A DNA stretch of 64,000 nt from Octopus sinensis (GCF_006345805.1 NC_043009.1:60264001-60328000), one strand, 5' to 3'. Counted from the first letter of the stretch, positions 3,390 to 63,172 are shown. A program made the numbers and translations. Notes: a model not told the origin generated them from the letters alone.

Positions 3390-3812
3390 ACTCTTTTACT
3401 CTCTTTTACTTGTTTCAGTCATTTGACTGCGGCCATGCTGGAGCACCGCCTTTAGTCGAGCAAATCGACTCCTGGACTTATTCTTTGTAAGCCCAGTACT
3501 TATTCTATCGGTCTCTTTTGCCGAACCGCTAAGTGACAGGGACGTAAACACACCAGCATCGGTTGTCAAGCAATGCTAGGGGGACAAACACAGACACACA
3601 AACATATACACACACACTTATATATATATATATATATATACATATATACGACAGGCTTCTTTCAGTTTCCGTCTACCAAATCCACTCACAAGGCATTGGT
3701 CGGCCCGGGGCTATAGCAGAAGACACTTGCCCAAGATGCCACGCAGTGGGACTGAACCCGGAACCATGTGGTTGGTTAGCAAGCTACTTACCACACAGCC
3801 ACTCCTGCGCCT
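3390..3812 (-). mobile_element. SINE family B, full-length
   Basis: Reverse complement of 62755-63172. Confidence 0.92.
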
Positions 3813-5415: not shown

Positions 5416-5749
5416 ATCCAAAAGAACAATATGCTTACATACATACATACATACATACATCTTTTTACTTGTATCAGCCATCTGACAGCCGTCATGTTAG
5501 GATACCGCCTTGAAGTGGGTTTTTTTTTTTTATCGAACAAATCTAGTCTCGGACTTATTTTTTAAGCCTAATACTTATTCTATCGACCGCTTTCTGTCGA
5601 ACCGCTAAGTTACGAAGACGTAAACACAACAACACGAGTTGTCAAGCGGTGGTAGGGGACAAACACAGACACGAAGACACACACGCACGCATCGATATAC
5701 ATACATACATACATACATACATACATACATACATACATACATACATACA

Positions 5750-6051: not shown

Positions 6052-6100
6052 TTAGGTCTCTATACATTTCTCAGCAGACATAGACACCATCTCCGACTTC
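6052..6100 (-). CDS. Tentative terminal coding exon (R-KSEMVSMSAEKCIET*)
   Basis: Phase-2 compatible AG at 6102/6101 would supply the tenth Cys, 11 residues after the junction. The acceptor is weak; the stronger acceptor at 6184 gives an immediate stop. Confidence 0.4.
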
Positions 6101-6356
6101 CTGTCGTTAGCTCAACGGAACATCGAGGACGTAACCGCTGGACGGAGATCTGCACCAGCACTTCGGCTGGTGCTCATTTTCAGCTGTGTAAACCGGAGAG
6201 ACGTAAAACGAAATGTCTTTCTCAACATATCATTCGGTCCAGGGTCGATTTGTTTGACTAAAGCTCTTCGAGGCGGTATCCCAGCATGACCGCAATCCAA
6301 TTACCGAAACAAGTAAAAGACAAATATTACGTCATTACCAGAAGCATTATACTGAC

Positions 6357-6610
6357 CTGTATTCTGTGTAGCCGTGTCCTCCGTACAAGTCATAGAACAG
6401 TTGAGTATTCTGAGGATCTTCTATCAAGCGGCAGAAGGCCCCATGTTGGAAGAAGCAGCTCTTATCGACATGATTTAATGGAAGGATTCCTCCGTTGAGT
6501 ATGTCAAACCCAGTTACCTCTATCTGGGAGCAAGTTGGGGCACTGGATTTGAGGGTCGGGATAAAAGCTGCCATATGACATCTCTTTACGTTTCGCAAAT
6601 ATTCTTTACT
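6357..6610 (-). CDS. Coding exon 3 of the stanniocalcin-like gene (SKEYLRNVKRCHMAAF...GHGYTEY)
   Basis: Acceptor tttttgtatatttgcag|, donor CAG|gtcagt. 254 nt, phase 0 in and phase 2 out, open frame with four Cys. Confidence 0.9.
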
Positions 6611-6652
6611 CTGCAAATATACAAAAACATATGGCAATGGTTAAAAATCTCA

Positions 6653-6742
<90 letters not shown>

Positions 6743-6764
6743 TGATTGATAGATTACTGTCTAC

Positions 6765-6925
6765 CTTTTCATCGAAAAAGTTGATGAATGACTCCACCTG
6801 GCGACACAAGTGATTACCAACATTAAAAGCAAAGTTTTGGTCAGCAGGACAGGTATGCGTTTCATCAAAACACCTATAAAAGTTGCAGTCACCTCTTGCC
6901 ACAAGCATGGCACACCTTTCTGCCC
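6765..6925 (-). CDS. Coding exon 2 of the stanniocalcin-like gene (AERCAMLVARGDCNFYRCFDETHTC...FFDEK)
   Basis: Acceptor ttttattcaacag|, donor AAG|gtagac. 161 nt, phase 1 in and phase 0 out, matching both flanking exons. Five Cys with spacing x8-x4-x6-x14. Confidence 0.9.
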
Positions 6926-7589
6926 CTGTTGAATAAAAATGATAGAAAAGTGTGAACATATACAAGTTAAGTAACATGGTGTAGAGACTGGGTTTGTAAT
7001 ATATGGGTGCGTTTAAGGAGGCGAGCTGGCAAAATGCTTAGTGGTATTTCGTCTGCCGTTACGTTCTGAGTTCAAATTCCACCGAGGTCAACCTTGCCTT
7101 TCATCCTTTCGGGGTCGATAAATAAAGTACCAGTTTCGCACTGAGGTCGATATAATCGACTTAATCCCTTTGTCTGTCCTTGTTCGTCCCCTCTGTGTTT
7201 AGTCCCTTGTGGGTAATAAAGAAATAGGTATTTCGTCTACCGCTACGTTCTGAGTTCAAATTCCGCCGAGGTCGATTGCCTTTCTTCCTTTCGGGATCGA
7301 TTAAATAAGTACGAGTTACGCACTGGGGTCAATGTAATCGACTTAATCCCTTTGTCTGTCCTTGTTTGTGCCCTCTATGTTTAGCCCCTTGTGGGCAGTA
7401 AAGAAAAATATTGTACATGTGTGTGTGTGTGTTAATTTATGCGCACTTATGTATGTGTTTGTGTGTGGTTTGTGCATGTCTGTATACTTGAGTGTATGCG
7501 CGCGCGTATGTGTGTGTACTTGTCTTTCTGTTTGTGTATGTTTCTCACCACACAACAAGTGGTGATGGTTTCTTTATGTCCCCGTATGT

Positions 7590-7645
7590 AGGTATGTCTA
7601 TATGTATCATCGTATGAAGGTTTGTAAGTAATTATGCCCATTCAC

Positions 7646-7686
<41 letters not shown>

Positions 7687-7782
7687 CGTCGTACTGCTGT
7701 AGGTATGTATGTACAGGTAACTACCACTCGCTCGTATTAAGCATTTTGCCAGGTGTACTAAGGATTCTGCCAGCTCTCTGCC

Positions 7783-7862
<80 letters not shown>
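7590..7862 (+). repeat. Direct-repeat copy 1 (paired with 12050-12275)
   Basis: Near-identical to 12050-12275 apart from an extra (TG)n tract. Confidence 0.9.
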
Positions 7863-7866
<4 letters not shown>

Positions 7867-8146
7867 CGAGACGAATAGAAAACGAGTCAAACTTATAAAG
7901 TAATGGCTGGTGTTTGGTTTGATTGCCCAAAACCCTCGATGACAATACTCCAACATAACAGCAATTCAATGACTGAAACAAGAAGAAATAAAAGGAAAAG
8001 AAAAAGGAAAAGAATCAAAGAAAGTAAATGAAGTGAAATGAGATTCTGTGATGTTCATGGTTTTATCCCAAGATCAAACAGCGTGCGTATAAGGAAATAG
8101 CTAAAGCCGAAAATCGAAGCTGATACAGAGACACATCTCTCAAGAC

Positions 8147-8570
8147 TAGTGGTTCTCATCGGAAGTCCGTATGACCCCTGGAGATCCATATAAAATTTGG
8201 GAGGGTTCCACGTAAGTAAAATAGTAAATTTGGGAGCTGCAGTAATATATTCAGGTTCCATGAAAATATTTGTTTTAGAAATATTTATAGCAAGAACAGC
8301 TCCGTTTTTTTCTCTAATGTTTTACGCTCTTCAACCTTTACAAGTGAATGTGTGACGAACTAAATAGATATTTTGAAAGAGGTATCTATAAGATTAGTTT
8401 ATAATTAGGCGCAGGAGTGGCTGTGTAGTAAGTAGCTTGCTTACCAACCACATGGTTCCGGGTTTAGTCCCACTGCGTGGCACCTTGGGCAAGTGTCTTC
8501 TACTATAGCCTCGGGCCGACCAAAGCCCATGTGAGTGGATTGGTAGACGGAAACTGAAAGAAATCCGTCG

Positions 8571-8603
<33 letters not shown>

Positions 8604-8665
8604 TATTATATATATACAAAGAAGTAAATATATGGCACAACGAAGTACCGATATTTGCATTACTA

Positions 8666-8703
<38 letters not shown>

Positions 8704-9013
8704 TATTATATGTGTGTGTGTGTATGTTTGTGCGTTTGTGTTTGTCCCCACAACATCGCTTGACAATGATGCTGGTGTGTTTACGTCCCCGTAACTTAGC
8801 GGTTCAGCAAAAGAGACCGATAGAATAAGGACTTACAAAGAATAAGTCCTGGGATCGATTTGCTCGACCAAAGGCGGTGGTCCAGCATGGCCGCTGTCAA
8901 ATGACTGAAACAAATAAAAAAAAATAAACATCGAATGGCTATTTGGGTCCACCAGAATAAAATAGTAATCAAAAGGGTCCATAGATTTTTTTTAAATAGT
9001 TGAGAGCCCCTGG
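8147..9013. mobile_element. hAT-like MITE interrupted by SINE-B (related copy 42619-43339 interrupted by SINE-A)
   Basis: Ends ctagtggttctca... and ...tgagagcccctg; internal gggtcc/ggaccc motifs shared with 42619-43339. Confidence 0.55.
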
Positions 9014-9192
9014 TCTAGACCTGCTCCATACAACAGGGGGCATTAAAATTGTTATTGATCAAAAACGAGATAAAAGATAGAAAATATAGATGGATATATT
9101 TGTTATAGATTTGTCAATGTACATGCGTGAGTGTGATAGAGAAAGAGAGAAAGAGAGGGGGAGAAAGAGGTGGAAGAGAGAGCGCAGAATTG

Positions 9193-9248
<56 letters not shown>

Positions 9249-9276
9249 TGTGTACAGCGCGCGCGTTTTTACTTAC

Positions 9277-11393
9277 TTAGGTTCGATGTTCTTTGAGCTA
9301 TTTTATTTCGAGCTGGTTGCCGGAAATTACGGGAAGAATCGTCAGTCGAGGGTCGAATGTCTGACCTCTGTCTCTGTGTGAAGGGCTTTACTGTTGACAA
9401 CATCGACTGCTGTACGCGTTCCTGCCACCAAGGAAACGGTCCATGGTTATTCCTATTGAATGAATGACTTGGATTTATTTTCAACCGAGGCCAAACTACC
9501 GGAGCTTTCCAATCGAATTCTTTGATTTGATCGCTGAAGCCACTTTTTAGTTTCGGTAGAGGAACTGTGATGCTCTCTGTTATTCTGCCTTGTTCAGGAA
9601 TTTTCTCGTTCCAGAAACTATTTCTCGATGCCCTCAATTTAGTTTTAGTTTGAGGAGTTTGTTCTGGTCCTGTTCTGTGGTTGCTTCTTGAAGGTACAGA
9701 GTGTAGTTTGGTAAATATTTCAGCTCTGGATATTTTTCGTTCGGGTTCAGGGTTTGATTGTCGTTGCTCAGATTCCGGATAAGGATTTCTTCGTTCAGGC
9801 TCAGGGCGAAGATTTCTCTGCTTATTTTCAGGGATTGAATGTGGGGGCCCAGACTCAGAAAATGGATTCCTTTGTTTAATCTCAGCAAACGGATTCTTTC
9901 GTTCAGGCTCAGAATGCGGATTTCTTCTTTCAGGCTCAGAAAATGGATTCCTTTGCTCAGGATCAGGACGAGAGTTCCTTCTTCAGGCTCAGGACGAGAG
10001 TTCCTTCTTTCAGGCTCAGGATGTGAATTCTTTCGCTTAGGCTCAGAAAATGGATTCCTTTGCTCAGGCTCAGGATGGAGGTTCCTTCTTTCAGGTTCAG
10101 AAAATGGATTATTTTGTTCAGGCTCAGGACGAGAGTTCCTTCTTTCAGGCTCAGGACGAGAGTTCCTTCTTTCAGGTTCAGAAAATGGATTTTTTGTTCA
10201 GGCTCAGGACGAGAGCTCCTTCTTTCAGGTTCAGAAAATGGATTATTTTGTTCAGGCTCAGGACGAGAGTTCCTTCTTTCAGGCTCAGGTTGGGAATTCT
10301 TTAGCCGAGGCTCAGAAAATGGATTTCTTCGCTCAGGCTCAGGACGCAAGATCCTTCTTTCAGGCTCAGAAAATGGATTTTTTCGTTCGGGCTTAGAAAA
10401 TGGATTTCTTCGCGCAGGCTCAGGACGCAAGATCCTTCTTTCAGGCTCATGATATGGATATTTTCGTTGAGGCTCGGAGTGTAGATTTTTTTGTCTTGTC
10501 TCATGATTTGCATATTTTTGCTGTAACTCTGGGATTGCAATTTTTCCTTCAGGTTTCGTGTAAGGACTCCTTAGTTCTAATTTGGGATTTGTATTTCTTT
10601 GCTCAGCTGCAGGTTGTAACCTTCTTCGTTCAGTAGCTGAAGGCTCTGGTTCAGGCTCAGAGTACAAAGAAATCCTTATCGAATTCTCACTCAACCAACT
10701 GTTCTTTCGATTCCTTTTATCTACATCAGATATTGGAAAAGTTCTTTGAATATTATCACCAGGAAATATTCCTGAAGGTTTTACATCAAGTACAACTTTT
10801 TCTCTTTTTGATTCTGTTCTTCCTGAATTTATTTTGTGATCTTTGTAAGGAATTAACCAGCCAGATTCTGAGAATCTTTGAATTGGATTAACACTTGGAT
10901 AAATAATCCTTGTCCACGGTCTAACATTGATTCCGTTGATTTCACCGGCAGTAAATCTATCTCTTTTAGACATCGCCGGATTTGCAGCAGACTTTATCCT
11001 TGGCTGTTGCGTACCACGTTTCACTCTGTTGCGTCTCAGAGACGTCCCGGCCTCTACAATACTGCGAAATGTTTCGATTGGAGGATCGGCGGGAAAAACG
11101 ATTCGCTTCGATTGAGTTTTTCGAAATCTAGAACTGACGTTTGGTGTGGCTGTCTCAACATCACTAATCAATATTTTTCGGAAATAATTTTTCGCGTATT
11201 CTTTATCGCGGTTCGAGCTTTCGCTGCTGAGGTGATCAGACAATGCTGCAATTCCCATGGTATCTGTTGTATGGACATCAATAAATGCAGTCGGCAAAAT
11301 ATGTACGTGAGATTTGGTGGTTAACATGCCTGTAACAGATGTAATGCATGTAGCTGTGGTTAGAAACCATAACACCGAGAACAAAAGATCCAT
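9277..11393 (-). CDS. First coding exon of a secreted stanniocalcin-like protein: signal peptide, pro-region and ~30 x 9-aa EPERR repeats; two 1-nt deletions (~10191, ~9982)
   Basis: ATG at 11393 starts the hydrophobic leader MDLLFSVLWFLTTATCITSVTG. A furin-like RNRVKR site follows. The EPERR repeat frame is continuous if single-base deletions at the T-runs 10190-10195 and 9982-9983 are corrected; both are visible against sister repeat units. The exon ends at a phase-1 donor CTAA|GTAAGT (9277/9276). An upstream acceptor is available at 11434 or 11414. Confidence 0.85.
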
Positions 11394-11895
11394 CCTTGCT
11401 CTCTTCAGCAAAACTGATTTAATTGTAAGTTACCTGTTCAGGTAAATGTAAAGATAGCTAACAGCGTCGATATTATGTTAGACAGTTTCGGTGGTAGGAT
11501 GTAGCTGTGATGGCGGAAGTGGTGGTGGTGATGGTATGGTGACGGTAGTGGGGGGGGGTATGGTGATGGTGGTGCTGCAGCTAATAGTAGAAGTAGTAAT
11601 AGTAGCAGTAGTAGCAGCAGCAGTGTTCGTGGTGGTAGATAAAGTAGACGTGGTGGAAGTGACGGTGGTATTAGAAGTAGTAATATTGGTAGTGGTGGTA
11701 GCATTGGTATTAGTGTTGGCGGAAGTGACGACAATGGTGGGCATGTAGTAGTAGTAGTAGTAGTAGTAGTAATTATGTTGATGCTTTTAGTGATAAAGAT
11801 GGTAGTGGTGATCGTTGTACAGGTTGTGGTGGTGGTGGTGGTGGTGGTGGTGAGAGGAACAGGAACATAATCATAGTGCAACTGCAATGGTAGTG

Positions 11896-12049: not shown

Positions 12050-12210
12050 AGGTATGTCTATATGTATCATGGTATGAAGGTTTGTAAGTAATTATGGTCA
12101 TTCACGTATGTGAACGTCGTACTGCTGTGTGCATGTATGTACAGGTAACTACCACTCGCTCGTATTAAGCATTTTGCCAGGTGTACTAAGGATTCTGCCA
12201 GCTCTCTGCC

Positions 12211-12275
<65 letters not shown>
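12050..12275 (+). repeat. Direct-repeat copy 2 (paired with 7590-7862)
   Basis: Same ggtatgtctatatgtatcat...gccagctctctgcctt(aat)n sequence. Confidence 0.9.
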
Positions 12276-12749
12276 TTTTGGCACAAGGGCAGCTTGGGGG
12301 AGGTGGGGATGAGTCGATTACATCGACCCCAGTGTTCAACTGGTACTTTTTCAATCGACCCCCGAAAGGATGAAACGAAAAGTCGACCTCGGGTGTATTT
12401 GAACTCAGAACGTAGCGGCAGATGAAATACTGCTAAGTATTTCGCCCGGCGTGCTACCGATTCTGCAAGCTCACCGCTTCAGTAATCTTTTCTACTCTAG
12501 GCACAAGGCCCGAACTTTGTGGGGATGGGGGCCAGTATATTAGATCGACCCCAGTACGCAACTGGTACTTAATTCATCGACCCCGAAAGGATGAAAGGCA
12601 AAGTCAACCTCGACGGAATTTCAACTCAGAACGTTTCTTATTTCTTTATTGCCCACAAGGGGCTAAACATAGAGGGGACAAACAAGGACAGACAAAGGGA
12701 TTAAGACGATTACATCGACCCCAGTGCCTAACTGGAGTCGATGTTGTTT

Positions 12750-20665: not shown

Positions 20666-21621
20666 CATAAACTGCTTGGAACCCGTCGTAAAAATATGTG
20701 TTTGTCCCTCACCATCGCTTGACATTCACTTATGGTTTGTTTACGTTCCTGTAACTTATCGGTTCAGCAAAAGAAATCGATTGAATAGAATAAGTGTCAG
20801 ACAGACTTTTGAAAAATAAGAATAGCACGGTGGTCGGTATGTTCAACTAAACCCTTCAAGGCGGTGCTCTCGCAAGGCCGCAATCCAATGATTAAAACAA
20901 ACAAAAGGTAAACGAAGGAAAAACTGGACATGACCAAAATACACTGGCGGCGAACTGGCAGAAACGTTAGCACGCTGGGCGAAATGCTCAGCAGTATTTC
21001 GTTTGTCGCTACGTTCTGAGTTCAAATTCCGCCGAGGTCGACTTTGCCTTTCATCCTTTCCTGGGTCGATAAATTAAGTACCAGTTACTCACTGGGGTCG
21101 ATGCAATCGACTTAATCCGTTTGTCTGTCCTTGTTTGTCCCCTCTGCGTTTAACCCCTTGTGGGTAATTAAATAAATAGGTATTTCGTCTGTCTTTACGT
21201 TCTGAGTTCAAATTCCGCCGAGGTCGACTTTGCCTTTCATCCTTTGCTGGGTCGATAAATTAAGTACCAGTTACTCACTGGGGTCGATGCAATCGAGTTA
21301 ATCAGTTTGACTGTCCTTGTTTGTCCTCTCTATGTTTTAGCCCCTTGTGGGTAGTAAAGAAATAAATACGTTGAGCTGGAGGAGGAGGAGAGGGTAAAGT
21401 ACAAAATAGCTGAGAGTCTATGAAGCAGAGGATTCTTCGTTGAGCTGTTTTCTAGCCGTAACCATCCAAAATGATTTTCACGGGATCTTTGAATTGCAAC
21501 GAAGAAGAATAACGCAAAAAAGAAAAGAACATCTGAAATGAGAAGATAACTCTTAGGTAACTCGTAGATTTTGGTAGCGAGTTTGGTAGTGTTTTATTTA
21601 ACAGTATCCGTTATGGTTAGA

Positions 21622-22695: not shown

Positions 22696-23464
22696 GATTT
22701 TAATCAATAAATTACATCAATAACTCAATGATGACACTTTGAATGTTTTTTTATAATTGTTTACGTATCGTTTCTCTGTTTGTTTATTTTTATATTCTTT
22801 ATTACGCTTCTTCTTATCGTGTTTTATATTTTCTCATTATTTTCGTAACGTTTTTTTTATTTATTACTTTTAACATTTTTTAAGTACTTCTTATGATTAT
22901 GTATTTATATTTGTTGGCTGTGTAGTTAAGACACACGTTTTGAAATCACATGATTTGTGGTTCAGTCCCACTGCACGGTACTTTGAGCAAATGTCTTCTA
23001 CTGTAAACCTTAGGGCGACTAATATCTTGTGAATGATTACGTTCGACAGAAACTGTGAGGAAGCCTGTTACATGTGTGTGTGTGTGTGTGTGTTTGCTCC
23101 TTCTTCCACCGCTTGAAAACCGGTGTTGGTTCATTTGCATTCCCATAATTCAGCGATTCTGCAAAACGAATCCGATAAAATAAATACCAGGCTTGGTATT
23201 TATTTTATTTATAAAATTTCTGTATTTATTTTATTTATAAAATTTCTGTATTCATTTTACTCTTTTACTTGTTTCAGTCATTTGACTGTGGCCATGCTGG
23301 AGCACCGCCTTTAGTTGATCGAGCAAATCGACCCCAGGACTTATTCTTTCTAAGCCTAGTACTTATTCTATCATTCTCTTTTGCGGAACCGCTAAGTTAC
23401 GGCGACGTAAACACACCAGCATCGGTTGTCAAGCGATGTTGGGGGGAACAAACACAGACACAAA

Positions 23465-23986: not shown

Positions 23987-24553
23987 TTGGGCTGTCCGGA
24001 AAGTTCGTGCCGATTTTTAAAGGAAAGAAAAATGTCAATAAATACTTGCCATTACATTTTTAATCAACCAAATATGAACCTTTTTCTTGCACAATGCGTC
24101 TCCATCTTTCCTTTAACTTGAAAATACCCTCTTCCCAGAATTGAGGTGGTTTCATGGCAAAGAATTCATCAAGGCATCTTTTTACGTCATCCAAGGAATT
24201 GAAATTTTTACCATTAAGTCTATTCTGCAGAGACCTCAATAAGTGGAAATCCGAAGGAGCAATATCTGGTGAATATGGAGGGTGGGGGTAACACATCCCA
24301 GCCGAGCTGCAGCAATTTTTGTCTGGTTCCCAAAGCATCAAGTGCCGAAAATGAAATTTCTTATCTTCCATTTTAAAGGGTTGCAGAATTAACACAGATA
24401 ATAGGAACATAAATCTTCTTCCACGAAAAGATAGCTTAAACTGTGCTCTAAATAGAGGTGTAGTCAAATCCTATTTTATGGACCCAACCACGTTCTAAAA
24501 TAAGTCGAAAGGTAAGCTACTATAAATCGGCACGAACTTTCTGGATAACCCAA
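23987..24553 (-). mobile_element. Internally deleted mariner transposon with transposase C-terminus
   Basis: TIRs TTGGGCTGTCCGGAAAGTTCGTGCCGATTT / AAATCGGCACGAACTTTCTGGATAACCCAA, TA target sites, and the mariner motif HPPYSPDIAPSDFHL...WRRIV. Confidence 0.93.
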
Positions 24554-24795: not shown

Positions 24796-26362
24796 ATGCC
24801 GAGTGATTCATTCACTTTTTGAAAAAAGTAGAACAGGTGTTGCTTTGAAACATTTTCTGGGAGGTAGGGTTGTTTTTTTTGTTTGCTTGCTTGTTTGTTT
24901 TATAGAATAAGTACTAGGCTTTCAAAGAATAAGTCCCGGGGTCGATTTCCTCGACTAAAGGCGGTGCTCCAGCATGGCCGCTGTCAAATGACTGAAACAA
25001 GTAAAAGAGCAAAAGAGTAAAAATAATATTTTCTGCTATAGGTACGAGACCTGAAATTTTGAGGAGGTGGGGTCTAGTCTATATACATTGACCCCCGGCT
25101 GTGTTCAACTGGTCTTTGTTTCATCGACCCAGAGAGAATAAAAGGTAAAGTTGATTTTGGCGGAATTTCTACTCAGAACATAAAGACGGACGAAAGCTAC
25201 TAAGCATTTTGTCCGGCATGCTAACGATTCTTATTTCTTTACTGCCCACAAGGGGCTATTTCTGGAGCAACGTGAAATGAATTGTTTTGCTCAAGAACAC
25301 AACGCGTCACCCGGTCCAGAAATCGAAACCACAATCTTACGTTCATGAGTCCAACACCCTAACCACTAAGCCACGCGCCTCCACCATATAATGTAAAGTC
25401 GACCTCGGCGGAATTTGAACTCAGAACGTAAAGAGGGATGAAAGACGCCCTGCATGCTAACGATTCTGCCAGCCTACCAATAATAAGAATAACCCTTTCT
25501 TATTTTGGCAGGCCAGCAACTTTGAGGGGTGGGGAAGTCGATTACATCGAACCCAGTGCGTCCCTGGTATTCATTTTATTGACCCCGAAAGGATGAAAGG
25601 CAAAGTCGACCTCGGCGGAATTTGAACTCAGAATATAAAGTCGGGTGAAATGCCGCTAAGCATTTTATCCGGTGTGCTAAGCTCGCCAATAATAATAATT
25701 ATTGTTACATTTGCGTAGGCTTTTTACATGTTATATTATTTACCTAATTTCACAAGAGTCATTCTTCTTTCAAACAAAGGACCAAATACGCCTATCGAAC
25801 TCAACCTGGCCGCTTATGTTGTAATTCTGAAACCCTGGAACTGGGTGTGGGTGGTACCCTGTGGTGAGGTAGCGTTACACGATAGCAACAACCACAAGAC
25901 ACAAAGGATAAATATTTTAAAAAAATTATTTGTGATATTCAATACATTCGTACGTTCCACCACATGGATTACCGGTGGAACATTGCCATCAAAAATACCA
26001 CTAAATGCAATCACAATAGGTCTGACTGTTGTTTACGACAGAAGGCAAAATTTGTGCGTTGTCCAACGGATATGAGTATTTCATTGAAAATCAATGAAAA
26101 AAAATGAGAACATTTATTGATAAATGTTGCTTTACCAAGATTATAAATTTACACTTATACCTATAATAATGAGCTAACTCTAAAGGCGGCGAGCTGGCAG
26201 AATCGTTACCGCGCCGGCAAAGATACATAACAGCATTTCGTTCGTCTTCACGTTCAAATTACGTCAACGTTGTCTTTGCCTTTTGGAATCGCCGGCCTGG
26301 CTTGACAAAATTTCTTACTGGTGCAATAGTTTACATTATAGTATCACCTTAACCCTTCGTGG

Positions 26363-26613: not shown

Positions 26614-27779
26614 CCCTTCGTGGGCCGGCGGGGTTGGAATTACACAAAAGGCCATTGGGGGTACCCTTTTATTTTTGCGCATTTCCGCACTGTCCATAAA
26701 GTAATATTTCTTTAATTTTAATTCCGCAGAGGTCGACTTCACCTTTCATCCTTTCGGAGGCGATAAATTAAGTACCAGTTGCGTACTGGAGTCGATCTAG
26801 TCGACTGGCCTCGCATACCCACCCACCCCACTCAAATTTTGGGCCTTGTGCCTAGTGTAGAAAATAATATTTGTTCAATCTTGTGTATATGTGTGAGTGC
26901 ATGATACAGAACAAGAAATTTAGCACTTTTTTTTATAGTTTTATAAACTATACATACTAAATATACATGCTATACATAATATACATACTAAATATATATA
27001 CTAAATAGATATATTAAATATAAATATACATACTAATTATAAAATAAAGCATTAAAAAGTATATCAATTCATACCAGTAAAAATACGAAGAAAATTGATT
27101 ATAGTTCATCAGAATATCTGAAAAAAGAACAGAAAAAAATAATTTCACAGGCGTAGGAATGGCTGTGGTAAGTAGCTTGCTTACCAACCACATGGTTCCG
27201 GGCTCAGTTCCACTGCGTGGCACCTTGGACAAGTGTCTTCTACTATAGCCTCGAGCCGACCAAAGCCTTGTGAGTGGATTTGGTAGACGGAAACTGAAAG
27301 AAACCCGTCGTATATGTATATATATATATATGTGTGTATGTATGTGTTTGTCTGTGTTTGTCCCCCAACATCGCTTGACAACCGATGCTGGTGTGTTTAC
27401 GTCCCCGTAACTTAGCGGTTTTGCAAAAGAGACCGATAGGATAAGTACTAGGCTTAGAAAGAATAAGTCCTGGGGTCGATTTTCTCGATCGACTAAAAGC
27501 GATGCTCCAGCATGGCCACTGTCAAATGACTGAAACAAGTAAAAGAGTAAAAGGGTAAAAGAGAGAAGGCCAATGAGGTCCAGTTGGCCCCCAATGACCA
27601 TATTTTATGCTATAACATTCATATGACTGGAAATTCTTAACTCAAAATTTGTACGAGCATACATGAACTATTGACAATAAGAGTCATGAGATATAAAATC
27701 ATTTAAGTAAAAAATATAAAAGTTGCATAACTTTTAAAATTCTCTGGGGTCCCAAGAGACACCGCCGGCCCACGAAGGG
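26614..27779. mobile_element. piggyBac-type non-autonomous element with nested SINEs
   Basis: Perfect 18-bp TIR CCCTTCGTGGGCCGGCGG / CCGCCGGCCCACGAAGGG, each flanked by TTAA (26610-26613, 27780-27783). Confidence 0.88.
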
Positions 27780-38670: not shown

Positions 38671-39373
38671 TGTGCATATACACATGTGTGCGCGTGAGTA
38701 TATATACACATATACTGAAGGCGGCAAGCTGGCAGAAACGTTAGCACGCCGGGCGAAATGCGTAGCCGTATTTCGTCTGTCGTTACGTTCCGAGTTCAAA
38801 TTCCGCCGAGGTCAACTTTGCCTTTCATCCTTTCGGGGTCGACAAATTACGCACTGGGGTCGAAGTAATCGACTTGATCCCTTTGTCTGTCCTTGTTTGT
38901 CCCCTCTGTGTGTAGCCCCTTGTGGGTAGTAAAGAAATATATATATACACATATAGAGAGAGAGAGAGCGAGAGAGGGAGAGAGAGAGAAAGGGAAGAGG
39001 AGAGAGAGAGACCGTGTTACTTGTAGTGATGTAGTAATGGTGATACCGCTGGTGGCGGTGGAGACGATGGCAGCAGCGGCGACGGTGGTGGTGCTGGTGG
39101 TGTTGGTGTTTGTGGTGCTGGTAGTAGTGGTAGTGGTGGTAGTGGTAGTGGTGGTCGTCGTCGTTGTCGCCGACGTCGCTGCTCAGAGACTGTTATTACT
39201 CTTGTCGAAAGTATTGAATATTTTATGAACAGCGCTGTTTAGATGAAATTTTGATTTACCATAATGACGTCCTTTTCTCTGTCCTGTGCTTTGTACATGA
39301 TTTGTTAACAGCAAATTAAACTAGCAACAACAGCAGCGACAAACAGGCAACAACACTAACAACAAAAACAACA

Positions 39374-40517
39374 CCGACGACGTCAACGACGATGCGGAGG
39401 GGGAGTACGACGCCGACGACGATGCGGAGGGGGAGTACGACACCGACGCCGACGACGGTGCGGAGGGGGAGTACGACGCCGACGACGATGACGATGCGGA
39501 GGGGGAGTACGACGCCGACGACGATGCGGAGGGGGAGTACGACGCCGACGACGATGACGATGCGGAGGGGGAGTACGACGCCGACGACGATGACAATGCG
39601 GAGGGGGAGTACGACACCGACGACGACGACGATGCGGAGGGGGAGTACGACGCCGACGACGATGACGATGCGGAGGGGGAGTACGACGCCGACGACGATG
39701 CGGAGGGGGAGTACGACGCCGACGACGATGACAATGCGGAGGGGGAGTACGACACCGACGACGACGACGATGACGATGCGGAGGGGGAGTACGACGCCGA
39801 CGACGATGCGGAGGGGGAGTACGGCGCCGACGACGATGCGGAGGGGGAGTACGACGCCGACGACGATGACGATGCGGAGGGGGAGTACGACGCCGACGAC
39901 GATGCGGATGGGGAGTACGACGCCGACGATGATGCGGAGGGGGAGTACGACGCCGACGACGATGCGGAGGGGGAGTACGACGCCGACGACGATGCGGAGG
40001 GGGAGTACGGCGCCGACGACGATGCGGAGGGGGAGTACGACGCCGATGACGATGCGGAGGGGGAGTACGACGCCGACGACGATGCGGAGGGGGAGTACGA
40101 CGCCGATTACGATGCGGAGGGGGAGTACGATGCCGACGACGATGCGGAGGGGGGTACGACGCCGACGACGATGCGGAGGGGGAGTACGACGCCGACGACG
40201 ATGCGGAGGGGGAGTACGACGCCGACGACGATGCGGATGGGGAGTACGACGCCGATGACGATGCGGAGGGGGAGTACGACGCCGATGACGATGCGGAGGG
40301 GGAGTACGACGCCGACGACGATGCGGAGAGGGAGTACGATGCCGATTATGATGCGGAGGGGGAGTACGACGCCGACGACGATGACGATGCGGAGGGGGAG
40401 TACGACGCCGACGACGATGACGATGTGGAGGGGGAGTACGACGTCGACGACGATGACGATTCAGAGGGGGAGTATGACGCCGACGACGATGACGATGATG
40501 ATGACCTCAAACTATAA
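39374..40517 (+). repeat. GC-rich minisatellite (~34 units, 24-36 bp) translating as (DDDAEGEYDA)n
   Basis: Unit gacgacgatgcggagggggagtacgacgcc. Length variation is in multiples of 3 except one 1-nt deletion near 40153. The Asp frame ends DDDDLKL* at 40517. Confidence 0.9.
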
Positions 40518-40569
40518 ACAAAAAAAAAGGAGAAAGACCTGGACTCATCCACACACAGTGAGAGCGAGT

Positions 40570-54494: not shown

Positions 54495-55135
54495 CATGCT
54501 GAAGATGCCACCAGTCGGGACGTTTGTGTCTTATTCATAGAGAAAGGGTACTTTTACTTGTACTTGTGACGGCGTTCACCCATGGCGGATTGAGCTGGCT
54601 TCTTCTCTGGTCCTGACAGCATCACGAACCATGGCGGCCCACGCTCGACGATCCCGTGTGAGGTCACTGGAGATAACAAGCCATTCGCGGTTTCATCTGC
54701 ACAGACTGACCACCTGCGGACCTGAGAGTTCGGAGAGGTCCCCCCTTTATCGTCGTTGCCCAGGTCTTCAGCTGCCCGCCCGTGCGTTTGCGCCAGCTGG
54801 GAAGTGGAGGTGGAAGGAGGACATCGCGAATCAGCTCACCCTCTGGACGCCGGGCTGCATGACCGAACCACCTTAAGCGCCGTTGTAGAAGCACCGAAGG
54901 GAGGGGCCAGAGATTCAGGCGATGACGAAGACCGGCTGTAGGAACCCGATCAATGCATCGGCAGCGAAGAATGCGGCGGAGACAGCCATTGTCGAATACC
55001 TCCAGCCTTCGCTGATCGACTACCCTCCTAGGCCATGTTTCACAACCATAGAGGAGGATAGTACGAACGACGGCCAGGTAGATTCGCACTTTGGTCACCG
55101 AGGGGAGAGGGTAACTGGTGACGGTATCATGAGAG
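54495..55135 (-). mobile_element. RTE-clade LINE 3' fragment
   Basis: TKVRIYLAVVRTILLYGCETWP...CLRRILR...RRLRWFGHAARRP...GGQLKTW is the RTE RT C-terminal signature. Confidence 0.9.
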
Positions 55136-55865
55136 CATTCAAGGCGGCGAGCTGACAGAAACGTTAACACGCCGGGCGAAATGCTTAGCGGTATTTCGTC
55201 TGCCACTACGTTCTGAGTTCAAATTCCGCCGAGGTTGACTTTGCCTTTCATACTTTCGGGATCGATAAATTAAGTACCAGTTACGCACTGGGGTCGATAT
55301 AATCGACTTAATCTGTTTGTCTGTCCTTGTTTGTCCCTTCTGTGTTTAGCCCCTTGTGGGTAGTAAAGAAATAGGTATCATGTGAGGTCTTCGTTGAACA
55401 GAACAGGTCAGCCGGAAGGTGGGGTGTCTGTGACTTCGAATTTCCCCTTGCTTGAAGCGTGACAGCCATCTCTGTGCAGTCAGTTCTTTCTGTAATATTG
55501 CTTTCTCTGTACACATAACAAATGTCGCGATTGGTTTTGGCAACTTTGGAACTTCGATTAAAATATTCTTTCTTTCTTTTGTTTTTCTACTCTTTACTCT
55601 TTTACTCTTTTACTTGTTTCAGTCATTTGACTGCGGCCATGCTGGAGCACAGCCTTAAGTCGAGCAAATCGACCCCAGGACTTATTCTTTGTAAGCCCAG
55701 TACTTATTCTATCGGTCTCTTTTGCCGAACCGCTAAGTTACGGCGACGTAAACACACCGGCATCGGTTGTCAAGCAATGCTAGGGGAACAAACACAGACA
55801 CATAAACATACACAGACATGTTTTCGTTTCTCGTTGTGTTCTACGATTATTTGTGGTGTCCTGTA

Positions 55866-58622: not shown

Positions 58623-60366
58623 TATTATTATAATCGCTTTCTGAATCATTTTTACTCGCACTCCATTCGTGCACGCCATCACTTGCAGACGCGATCGCCG
58701 ATTCACAAGCACTCATAGACGGACTTATTCTTTTATTCTTTTACACGTTTCAGTTATTTGTCTGCGACCATGCTGGAGCACCGTCTTTAGTCAAACAAGT
58801 CGACTACAGAACTTATTCTTTGTAAGCCTAGTGTTTATTCTAACGGGCTCTTTTCACAAACACACCAACATCGGTTGTCAAGTGATGATGCTGGAGGACA
58901 AACCCAACAAAATATAAATATGTCTAAAGAGAAATTGGACATAAGAGGCATCAGCTGTAGTGTGCAAGAGAGAAGACTGCACAGATATGATCACGTGGCG
59001 CGGATGGATGAGGGCAGACGAGTGGCTGTGTGGTAAGTAGCTTGTTTACCAACCACATGGTTCAGGGTTCAGTCCCACTGCGTGGCATCTTGGGCAAGTG
59101 TCTTCTGCTATAGCCCCGGGCCGACCAATGCCTTGTGAGTGGATTTGGTAGACGGAAACTGAAAGAAGCCTGTCATATATATGTATATATATGTGTGTAT
59201 GTGTATGTTTGTGTGTATGTGTTTGTCCCCCTAGCATTGCTTGACAACCGATGCTGGTGTGTTTATGTCCCCGTTACTTAGCGGTTCGGCAAAAGAGACC
59301 GATAGAATAAGTACTGAGCTTACAAAGAATAAGTCTCGGGGTCGATTTGCTCGACTAAAGGCGGTGCTCCAGCATGGCCGCAGTCAAAATGACTGAAACA
59401 AGTAAAAGAGAGAGAGAGAGAGATAGGAAAACTTGCGATGAAATAGTGAAGTCTGACAGCAGGATGTTGAACCTCACCAAGATGACAAAAACTTGGATGA
59501 ATGGCGATTCGCTGTCCTGGAGAACACCGGGCATTCTCAGAAAAACTGAGATCCTAAAAGGATATCGTCAGTGTCTATGTCTCCTTTTCTCCCGTACCTA
59601 ATTTGTACCGGTCAAACCTTCCCATATTCTCATCTTTATAGCTCCCACCCCATAATAGAACTTCAGTGCCATTTACAGCAAATCAAAACAGCTTTGCATG
59701 TATTACGATGTGGAGGCGCGTGGCTTAGTGGTTAGGGTGTCAGCATCGTGATCGTAAGATTGTGATTTCGATTCCTGGACCGGGCTATGCGTTGTGTTCT
59801 TGAGCAAAGCACTTCATTTCACGTTGCTCCAGTCCACTCAGCTGGCAAAAATGAGTAACGCTGCGATGGACTGGCGTTTCCGTCCAGCTAGGGAACACAT
59901 ACGCCATGGAAACCGGGAAACCGGGCCCATGAGCCTGGCTAGGCTTTAAAAGGGCGCATTTATTATTTCTTGTTTTTATTATGTATTAACTTACATTACA
60001 GAAGAGCATAAGTACGTCCGTAAGTAAAGTAACATAGTAGAATGTATGTGAGATTTTTAGCTACTGCACTCATAATAGAAAATTCATTTTGGAAACGTAG
60101 TCTTCTCCTTTTCCGGGTTAGTAAATAGAAAATCATGCGCGAGAACATGTGAAACCCTTCGGTCGCAACGGAAATTATACAAGGAGAGGTAGCTCTTCTT
60201 TCCTCTGGGACAAGAGTTTATTTATGCCTTCTTGCTTTTTCACTAGCAAGACTGTTTATTTACCTCCAGTATTGAAGAGGCTACTTCTTACCTCCGGCTA
60301 GCATGTTTGATGAATTATCAGTGTTGCCAAGGACAACACTAGATACGAAACCAATGGTAACGTCTT

Positions 60367-60596: not shown

Positions 60597-61607
60597 GGTA
60601 ACGTCTTGGCCGTTTATATACCACAGAGAGAGAGGAGGGAAGAGAAAGAGAGAGAGAGAGAGACAGACAGAAAGAGTGGGTGTGCGCGTGTGGGTGTCTC
60701 TACAGATTAGATCCAGAGTTGTTCGATACAGAAAGCACTTGGTAGCGCTCAAATGATTTGAAATTACATTCTGAAATCTTTACCAAGGACGAAGTCCGCG
60801 GAGTAAAGAGTTGTTATAAGAAGAATCCAGGTGGGCAGGTGTGGAGATAACGATGCAAATAAACAAAAAAATTAACTTCTTCAATATTCAAGTACAAATA
60901 TGTAGGTAATTATATATTAACAGAACAAACTTACACACAGTACAAAAACAGAGAAATTTAAAGTGGAGGGGGTATACTGTTACAAGTCCGACAGCAGTTT
61001 CTACAGGTTTTAACTTACGTCATAATGTTGGCGGATGTAGTTCACAAAAATAGGTGCCCAGTTACGGATACTTATTTACTCATTTACTTGTTTCAGTCAT
61101 TTGACTGTGGCCATGCTGGAGCACTGCCCTTTAGTCGAGCAAATCGACCCCAGGACTTATTCTTTGTAAGCCTAGTACTTATTCTATCGGTCTCTTTTGC
61201 CCGAAGCTATAGTAGAAGACACTTGCCCAAGATGCCACGCAGTGGGACTGAACCCGGAACCATGTGGTTCGTAAGCAAGCTACTTACCACACAGCCACTC
61301 CTACGCCTATGTATATATTTTTTTCTTCTTTACTGCCCTCAAGGGGCTAAACATAGAGGGGACAAACAAGGACAGACAAAGGGATTAAGTCGATTACATC
61401 GACCCCAGTGCGTAGCAGGTACTTAATTTATCGACCCGGAAAGGATGAAAAGCAAAGTCGACCTTGGCGGAATTTGAACTCAGAACATAGCGGCAGACGA
61501 AATACGGCTACGCATTTCGCCCGGCGTGCTAACGTCTCTGCCAGCTCACCGGCGACCACACCTGTTCACCGTCGTCTACATAGAGCCGGAGATGTCGCAG
61601 TCTCAGC

Positions 61608-62754: not shown

Positions 62755-63172
62755 AGGCGCAGGAGTGGCTGTGTGGTAAGTAGCTTGCTTACCAACCACA
62801 TGGTTCCGGGTTCAGTCCCACCGCGTGACTTCTAGTGTCTTCAAGTGTCTTCTACTATAGCCTCGGGCCGACCAAAGCCTCGTGAGTGGATTTGGTAGAC
62901 GGAAACTGAAAGAAGCCGGTCGTATATATGTAAATATATGTGTGTGTGTGTGGTGTGTGTGTGTGTGTGTGTTTGTGCCCCAACATCGCTTGACAACCGA
63001 TGCTGGTGTGTTTACGTCCCCGTTACTTAGCGGTTCGGCAAAAGAGACCGATAGAATAAGTACTAGGCTTTCAAAGAATAAGTCCTGGGGGTCGATTTGC
63101 TCGACTAAAGGCGGTGCTCCAGCATGGCCACAGTCAAATGACTGAAACGAGTAAAAGAGTAAAAGAGAGTAA
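62755..63172 (+). mobile_element. SINE family B, tRNA-derived, full-length (other copies ~3390-3812, 5460-5990, 8407-8920, 20215-20910, 23255-23720, 27149-27560, 55590-56182, 59025-59408, 61075-61308)
   Basis: Head aggcgcaggagtggctgtgtggtaag...ggttcagtccc (A/B boxes), internal (TA)n(TG)n, tail (gtaaaaga)n. Confidence 0.92.

Follow-up and report, generated by a model that had tools for sequence, protein, structure and literature searches.

What does a cysteine-rich gene of Octopus sinensis encode: the short uncharacterized protein of the current annotation, or a stanniocalcin-like domain carried at the end of a long secreted precursor? The question is raised by a 64,000-nucleotide (nt) stretch of this genome (GCF_006345805.1 NC_043009.1:60264001-60328000; hereafter "the window"), in which the original prediction, made from the DNA alone, placed a stanniocalcin-like Cys domain fused behind a repetitive secreted pro-region of about 700 amino acids (aa) at positions 6052 to 11393. 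The window corresponds to O. sinensis CM016871.1 (GCA_006345805.1), with 0 mismatches across a 19.4-kb overlap and position 1 at nucleotide 60,264,001 of the record. On its minus strand, NCBI annotates the gene LOC118765724, whose 216-aa product, named "uncharacterized protein", is referred to here as P0001. The locus is a real O. sinensis gene for a divergent, mollusc-specific stanniocalcin relative, and the best explanation of the data is that its four exons encode a secreted member of the stanniocalcin family, from a divergent mollusc-only clade. Its probable architecture is the extreme form of a pattern found across this so far unnamed clade, and not a one-off. With a probability of roughly 0.6, it encodes one secreted precursor of ~880 aa, the first exon of which is broken in the assembly by sequence errors or by very recent lesions.

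A remote stanniocalcin domain in exons 2 to 4

By sequence comparison, placing the cysteine domain among the stanniocalcins, as a remote homologue, is sound. A phmmer search with P0001 against 1.84 billion representative proteins returned 36 homologues with E-values down to 1e-24, a result that is not due to chance. Across these homologues C47, C56, C61, C68 and C83 are invariant and conservation reaches at least 90% at C107, C123, C148, C156 and C193; all ten octopus cysteines align with cysteines of STC2. The Pfam stanniocalcin family (PF03298) is matched by 19 of the 36 homologues; when ten homologues were scanned singly, three (P0004, P0005 and P0009) passed the curated cutoff, scoring 44-62 bits against the required 23. 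A profile built from all 36 homologues (A1) and compared with the Protein Data Bank (PDB) matched chains of human STC2 only, including 7y5q_C at E 5e-15 over the full domain, and for a second profile (A2), built only from eleven domains of the mollusc proteins that Pfam misses, STC2 chains were again the sole matches at E up to 10, with an E-value of 2e-5.

Structure prediction agrees with these profile matches. Modelled by AlphaFold2 (AF2) with the 36-sequence alignment, exons 2-4, which supply the ~170 C-terminal residues, form an all-helical stanniocalcin fold with ten conserved cysteines, at a predicted local distance difference test score (pLDDT) of 86, exceeding 90 over most of the domain, and a predicted template modelling score (pTM) of 0.77. 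In a Foldseek comparison of this model with the PDB, ranks one to three were taken by STC2 chains (probability 0.99-1.0; TM-score 0.44 on the query and 0.55 on the target) and rank five by a fourth STC2 chain (probability 0.92), non-STC2 matches reaching 0.10 at most. Of the two vertebrate proteins named in the original prediction for structural comparison, STC1 and STC2, it is STC2 alone that provides the confident matches.

Against this assignment stand the lack of any PF03298 match to the exon 2-3 peptide at E up to 10 or to P0001 at E up to 0.01, and the weakness of the Foldseek E-values (0.09-0.2). Used as a single query, the exon 2-3 peptide likewise matched no stanniocalcin among PDB sequences. 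The Pfam comparison proposed with the original prediction is therefore answered in two parts, the peptide itself being unmatched and its homologues being matched in the proportion given above. The domain is assigned to the stanniocalcins because homologues match PF03298, because both profiles match STC2 only, and because AF2 and Foldseek favour STC2; the identity first read from the DNA is in this way borne out as remote homology.

Exon structure and introns shared with relatives

Spliced mapping of the NCBI model (P0001, 100% identical) onto the locus gives a phase-1 junction at 9277/6925, a phase-0 junction at 6765/6610 and a phase-2 donor after 6357, identical to the junctions and the phases (1/0/2) that had been predicted. 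Minus-strand translation reproduces the predicted exons 2 and 3 (Table 1) together with Cys gaps of 8, 4, 6, 14, 23, 15, 24 and 7. The donor after 9277 reads GTAAGT following a terminal A (intron from 9276; phase 1), and good pyrimidine tracts precede the acceptors of both exons. The last exon is located 13 kb downstream of exon 3 and encodes the C-terminal 35 residues of P0001, which exact and tblastn searches found nowhere within the window. It aligns with its homologues, the relatives' own last exons, and places Cys10 36 residues past Cys9. The tentative last exon of the original prediction (6052..6100, minus strand) was rejected, being intronic and absent from the NCBI product; that it had also suggested a Cys gap of 36 is a coincidence. 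Exons 2-4 are intact, with the ten cysteines, a conserved Tyr and every splice site retained.

The loci of seven relatives were fetched and their proteins mapped onto them. The phase-1 intron falls 3-7 residues before Cys1, the phase-0 intron interrupts the motif F-D-x-x-G/S-x-x-Y/W ahead of its G/S residue, between Cys5 and Cys6, and the phase-2 intron lies ~11 residues before Cys10. The octopus gene has all three at the same places as five of six mollusc relatives, among them the two Lottia genes, Liolophura and Lymnaea, and as the Argonauta stanniocalcin, which is Pfam-positive. Haliotis rufescens has the phase-0 and phase-2 introns in common with octopus, its phase-1 intron being further upstream, and amphioxus has the first two introns in common with it. 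Exon 2 measures 161 nt in three genes, namely those of octopus, Lottia (234526) and the Argonauta stanniocalcin. The argument from intron phase, which the original prediction had drawn from human STC1, holds among invertebrates, through the Argonauta stanniocalcin and, for the first two introns, amphioxus; the literature yielded no usable account of where stanniocalcin introns lie.

A mollusc-only clade with low-complexity N-termini

A maximum-likelihood tree of 40 domains separates a clade confined to molluscs (support 100/99), which comprises the octopus gene and proteins from chiton, abalone, limpet and pond snail, from a second group with all remaining domains, including the canonical cephalopod stanniocalcin. 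The members of the divergent clade, Liolophura XP_064609416.1 (labelled "loricrin-like"), Lottia XP_009060878.1 and XP_009060827.1, Patella KAK6172245.1, Haliotis XP_046356139.2 and XP_067660373.1, and Lymnaea CAL1545289.1, are the closest relatives of the octopus domain, with E-values of 1e-24 to 5e-4 and up to 34% identity, and none of them passes the Pfam cutoff. The octopus gene is the only cephalopod sequence of this clade in the databases searched. Because the canonical Argonauta stanniocalcin (P0009) falls outside the clade, on the second main branch, octopods have both a canonical stanniocalcin and this divergent gene.

The clade members carry lineage-specific low-complexity N-termini, and the octopus protein is probably the extreme form of this pattern. 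Of the seven mollusc relatives, at least six have a low-complexity region ahead of the domain, and in five it ends at the same phase-1 intron; these regions are about 40-280 aa long, vary in composition (P/Q, T/P or G/C) and are not alignable with that of octopus. Among relatives whose gene models look complete, at least four (Lottia 234526, Haliotis rufescens, Patella and Lymnaea) have a signal-peptide-like start followed by a low-complexity stretch, and three of the four encode it in an exon or exons ending at that same intron. Basic residues, or an R-R-K-R site, stand just before the domain in these relatives. In Lottia 234505, Liolophura and Lymnaea the N-terminal region is split over two or three exons. 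The architecture described as unusual in the original prediction is thus less so, given the low-complexity N-termini of the relatives, and the octopus extension is plausible as part of the long precursor at the probability given above.

Several further features of the clade were observed. A Met-rich tail, M-M-M-x-G-x-G-(G/A)-D, ends the vetigastropod and patellogastropod members, from Haliotis, Lottia and Patella (P0003, P0007, P0008, P0011 and P0015), and this GG(A)D tail is absent from the octopus, chiton and Lymnaea members. The Haliotis asinina member has four tandem domains. Both Lottia genes (L002 1..524 and L004 1..70; both on Lottia gigantea scaffold KB202685.1) lie just downstream of a Cation_efflux gene, ~950 kb apart, which suggests that the pair arose by a two-gene segmental duplication.

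The first exon: one start, three frames and a repeat array

The predicted signal-peptide start is found as described: the ATG at 11393, in a good context for initiation with A at -3 and G at +4, and with an in-frame TAA 13 codons upstream, opens a frame that begins signal-peptide-like. For the N-terminal open reading frame (ORF), AF2 gives a helix over residues 2-25; run on residues 1-300 as a single sequence it returned a pLDDT of 39 and was uninformative past this helix. The predicted ~700-aa first exon, 11393..9277, is not one frame but three (pieces A, B and C in Table 1), and it holds only when read across two one-base gaps. As the assembly stands, the signal-peptide-like start reaches the Cys domain only across both frame breaks, the repeat peptide passing into the second frame from ~10182 and into the third from ~9961, and the NCBI model starts at an internal ATG in the third frame.

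The breaks were located by cutting the array at its Pro-Glu anchors. The peptide unit reads roughly E-P-E-(R/Q)-(R/K)-N-(P/S)-(F/R)-(S/P), and of the 41 sub-units inside the 27-nt repeat array exactly two have a length that three does not divide, and there the peptide register shifts into the following frame, the coordinate of the "PE" anchor modulo 3 changing from 2 to 0 at the first. Each break lacks one base within a run of A. On either side of the array the sequence is non-repetitive and open in one frame: for the 290 codons of piece A the other two frames hold 15 and 23 stops, for the 156 codons of piece C 8 and 10, and in neither case did any of 2000 shuffles stay open (0/2000). Upstream of 9403 the third frame has neither stop nor ATG for ~200 codons, no ATG occurring from ~9999 to 9403.

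The N-terminal region as a whole is rich in Pro, Arg, Ser and Glu, with an isoelectric point of about 10 and 29 dibasic sites over the three pieces. Most of the ~22 nonapeptide units of the frame-broken array contain RR, RK, KR or QR, none has a glycine able to serve as an amidation signal, and the motif R-A-E-R stands immediately before Cys1. The repeated nonapeptide, considered as part of a prohormone-type multi-copy peptide precursor, showed no significant similarity to the N-termini of the relatives and no match to a Pfam family. Two ideas were dropped: that an ancestral "NPF...EP" linker motif had been amplified, since BLASTP against the relatives' N-termini was not significant, and that the signal peptides of octopus and its relatives are orthologous, the best E-value being 0.37.

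Table 1. Positions of the exons, first-exon segments and interspersed repeat copies (window coordinates unless another record is named).
Feature	Position	Strand	Description
Start codon and signal-peptide-like segment	11328..11393 (ATG 11393..11391)	-	22 residues ending V-T-G
Frame piece A	10194..11393	-	400 codons: ~290 non-repetitive (basic, Pro/Ser/Arg-rich), then start of array
Tandem array	9850..10449	-	Period 27 nt, 22.3 copies (Tandem Repeats Finder)
First frame break	10183..10202	-	Sub-unit of 20 nt vs 21 in sister copies
Frame piece B	9982..10182	-	67 codons of repeat, second frame
Second frame break	9962..9987	-	Sub-unit of 26 nt vs 27 in sister copies; holds the first frame's stop 9965..9963
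Frame piece C	9277..9961	-	228 codons plus one base: end of repeat, 156 non-repetitive codons, ATG 9403..9401, phase-1 donor
Exon 2	6765..6925	-	161 nt; Cys1-Cys5; phase 1 in, phase 0 out
Exon 3	6357..6610	-	254 nt; Cys6-Cys9; phase 0 in, phase 2 out
Last exon (exon 4)	L001 26010..26118, ~6.6 kb beyond window position 1		Cys10
Other ~80-bp repeat copies	3402..3477, 5463..5515, 20832..20907, 23261..23310, 24936..25013, 27507..27546		
Other ~80-bp repeat copies	55606..55675, 58737..58804, 59339..59409, 61080..61150, 63089..63158		

A long precursor or a shorter product

In the long precursor favoured here, the large first exon would encode a signal peptide followed by ~680 basic, Pro/Arg/Glu/Ser-rich and probably disordered residues, and these, with their ~22 nonapeptide repeats and 29 dibasic sites, would bring the product to about 880 aa, the two one-base gaps in the repeats being long-read consensus errors or very recent lesions. 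Single missing bases at A runs are the usual residual error of long-read consensus. The stretch is most aptly seen as a single long coding exon containing two one-base gaps, and neither as an intact 700-codon ORF nor as a short exon with a long leader: one long exon would leave both non-repeat flanks open in one frame each and have the array join them with two of 41 sub-units aberrant, as is seen. The NCBI model would start at the internal ATG because the one-base gaps broke the frame upstream of it. The annotated 216-aa product, which lacks a signal peptide and contains a domain with five presumed disulfides, is probably implausible and makes little biological sense. Several observations count against the long precursor. 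NCBI annotates 216 aa only, and the assembly does not encode the long protein as read, the frame from ATG 11393 ending after 476 codons at a stop. The N-terminal ORF has no Pfam match and, searched as the whole 476 aa and as residues 1-290, no homologue among proteins of 262-833 aa; BLASTP of pieces A, B and C individually against the relatives' N-termini gave no significant match, the best E-value belonging to the signal peptide; and no orthologue from another cephalopod was found in the databases searched.

Were the frame breaks real, the locus would be a recently disabled gene or allele: its upstream frame would give a secreted 476-aa product of the repeat that lacks the Cys domain, and the stanniocalcin-like exons would lose any useful translation. 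This is unlikely, even if the assembly as it reads shows both breaks, tandem repeats are prone to slippage and neither an orthologue nor a second copy of the long form was found: exons 2-4 are intact and their domain folds at pLDDT >90, each break is a single base missing from an A run, and beyond the breaks the repeat and 156 further codons remain open in the shifted frame, so that any decay would be very recent. Still more doubtful is the possibility that the 216-aa model is essentially right, with the upstream frame amounting to a 5' leader, to an upstream ORF or to an unannotated gene of its own, and with translation starting at 9403 or in another first exon. It is the model that NCBI provides, and the NCBI annotation calls no gene over 9963..11411 within 10 kb upstream; it would nevertheless leave without a signal peptide a product with five disulfides from a family that is secreted (PMC5654410), would leave unexplained an ATG-less frame open for ~200 codons ahead of its start, 156 of them non-repetitive, and would set octopus apart from relatives that encode signal peptide and linker in an exon ending at the same phase-1 intron. 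A further variant, in which what is taken for the first exon comprises at least two exons and small introns within the array remove the frame breaks to give a protein that is long but shorter than 880 aa, has a precedent in the divided N-terminal regions of Lottia 234505, Liolophura and Lymnaea. It is nonetheless improbable, as the peptide register of the repeat persists across the three frames, which is unexpected for an intron, and no specific donor/acceptor pair was identified.

Comparison with known stanniocalcin systems

Invertebrate stanniocalcin homologues have been known since 2011 (Roch & Sherwood 2011, PMC5654410). Members of the family are secreted, disulfide-bonded proteins, typically of 150-300 aa with a short N-terminus (PMC5654410). 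The annotated 216-aa product would fit this size and the ~880-aa precursor would not. Compared with STC1 and STC2 (PF03298; structures 8A7D, 8A7E, 7Y5Q and 8HGH), the octopus domain has the same all-helical fold as STC2 at ~13% identity, and its Cys gaps of 8, 4, 6, 14, 23 and 15 parallel the 8, 4, 5, 8, 23 and then 15 of STC2. It differs in the longer loops between Cys4 and Cys5 and between Cys7 and Cys8, in the lack of an N-X-S/T sequon and, probably, in an N-terminal extension of ~700 aa where the vertebrate proteins have a short N-terminus. The canonical Argonauta hians stanniocalcin P0009 (named after octopus LOC115215717) matches the octopus domain at a phmmer E-value of 2e-8 and has the same introns, phases, 161-nt exon 2 and ten cysteines. 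It is, by contrast, a 222-aa protein with its signal peptide directly before the domain, scores 44 bits against Pfam and belongs to the other main branch of the tree.

Stanniocalcin "doppelganger toxins" (superfamily SF5) have been described from octopus posterior salivary glands in a 2026 preprint (bioRxiv 10.64898/2026.02.02.703354). Like the product proposed for the present gene, they are secreted octopod proteins of the stanniocalcin family; by their description they are detectable by BLASTp and run from the signal peptide straight to the C-terminus, whereas the octopus gene is Pfam-negative with a probable long extension. Multi-domain proteins are also known among deuterostomes, in which amphioxus combines phospholipase A2 (PLA2) with two stanniocalcin (STC) modules, or two such modules with lysozyme g, and a Saccoglossus protein reaches 1204 aa. 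These show the domain built as a module into larger secreted proteins; their partners are folded enzyme domains and not a low-complexity repeat as in octopus, and they belong to a different clade.

Among the proteins collected here, stanniocalcin-like modules occur in tandem (x2 to x4) or fused to phospholipase A2, goose-type lysozyme, pesticin-like or WSC domains, in amphioxus, Saccoglossus, abalone, clam and fly (P0004, P0006, P0012, P0003, P0013 and P0031). The stanniocalcin fold thus serves as a module far more widely than the picture of a small hormone implies. A literature search by LOC118765724, by the accessions of the relatives and by the Lottia model numbers found no paper.

Possible function

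Vertebrate STC1 and STC2 bind and inhibit the metalloproteinase PAPP-A, and a cysteine in the Cys6-Cys7 loop of STC2 links it covalently to PAPP-A. By analogy, the octopus domain is most likely a secreted module, locked by disulfides, that would bind an extracellular partner. Because it has neither the extra Cys6-Cys7 loop cysteine of STC2 nor an eleventh Cys, a covalent link of the PAPP-A type and disulfide dimerisation are both unlikely. The N-terminal region may be a disordered spacer, or may be removed or processed at basic sites such as the R-A-E-R before Cys1, and may also be a source of small peptides. It is a distinctly speculative suggestion, and in our judgement a long shot, that the ~880-aa protein is a polyprotein from which ~22 dibasic-flanked acidic nonapeptides are cut out and the stanniocalcin-like module is released.

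Other features of the window

An ~80-bp interspersed repeat occurs in at least 12 copies in the window (70-82% identical, in both orientations), one of them in intron 3 (6237..6320) and the others listed in Table 1, and gives rise to recurring "FQSFD.GHAG..P" pseudo-ORFs. At 45166..45570 (+) a 134-aa ORF has a signal-peptide-like start followed by long glycine runs, and could represent a small gene of one exon whose secreted product is glycine-rich. The non-repetitive ORFs at 24060..24467 (-) and 54664..55206 (-) look like the C-terminal parts of a mariner-type transposase and a retroelement polymerase; Pfam gave no match for either of these or for the glycine-rich ORF. A G+C-rich minisatellite at 39321..40599 (GC 0.53 vs about 0.39 around it) has units reading "MRRGSTTPTT" on one strand and "SASYSPSASSSS" on the other, with long artefactual ORFs on both strands. 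Near-identical blocks at 7783..7900 and 12186..12290, with the common flank "...GGCAGAATCCTTAGTACACCTGGCAAAATGCTTAA..." and long ATT/AAT trinucleotide runs, are probably two copies of the same microsatellite-bearing mobile element.

Implications for the stanniocalcin family

The gene points to a second, mollusc-only stanniocalcin lineage that is missed by Pfam, is labelled "uncharacterized" or "loricrin-like" in the databases and exists alongside the canonical gene within the same animals. It also provides a case in which two single-base gaps in a long-read assembly have probably truncated a gene model. The lineage offers a gene set for asking what the stanniocalcin fold binds outside vertebrates, a topical matter in view of the stanniocalcin mimics recently reported in octopus venom glands (bioRxiv 10.64898/2026.02.02.703354). 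In most of its members, this divergent lineage couples a conserved five-disulfide module to fast-evolving, low-complexity N-termini. If the polyprotein suggestion were true, the octopus gene would represent a type of precursor, for a hormone or a secretion and possibly salivary or venomous, that is undescribed for any stanniocalcin, and a mollusc-wide clade would repeatedly have grown lineage-specific low-complexity N-termini.

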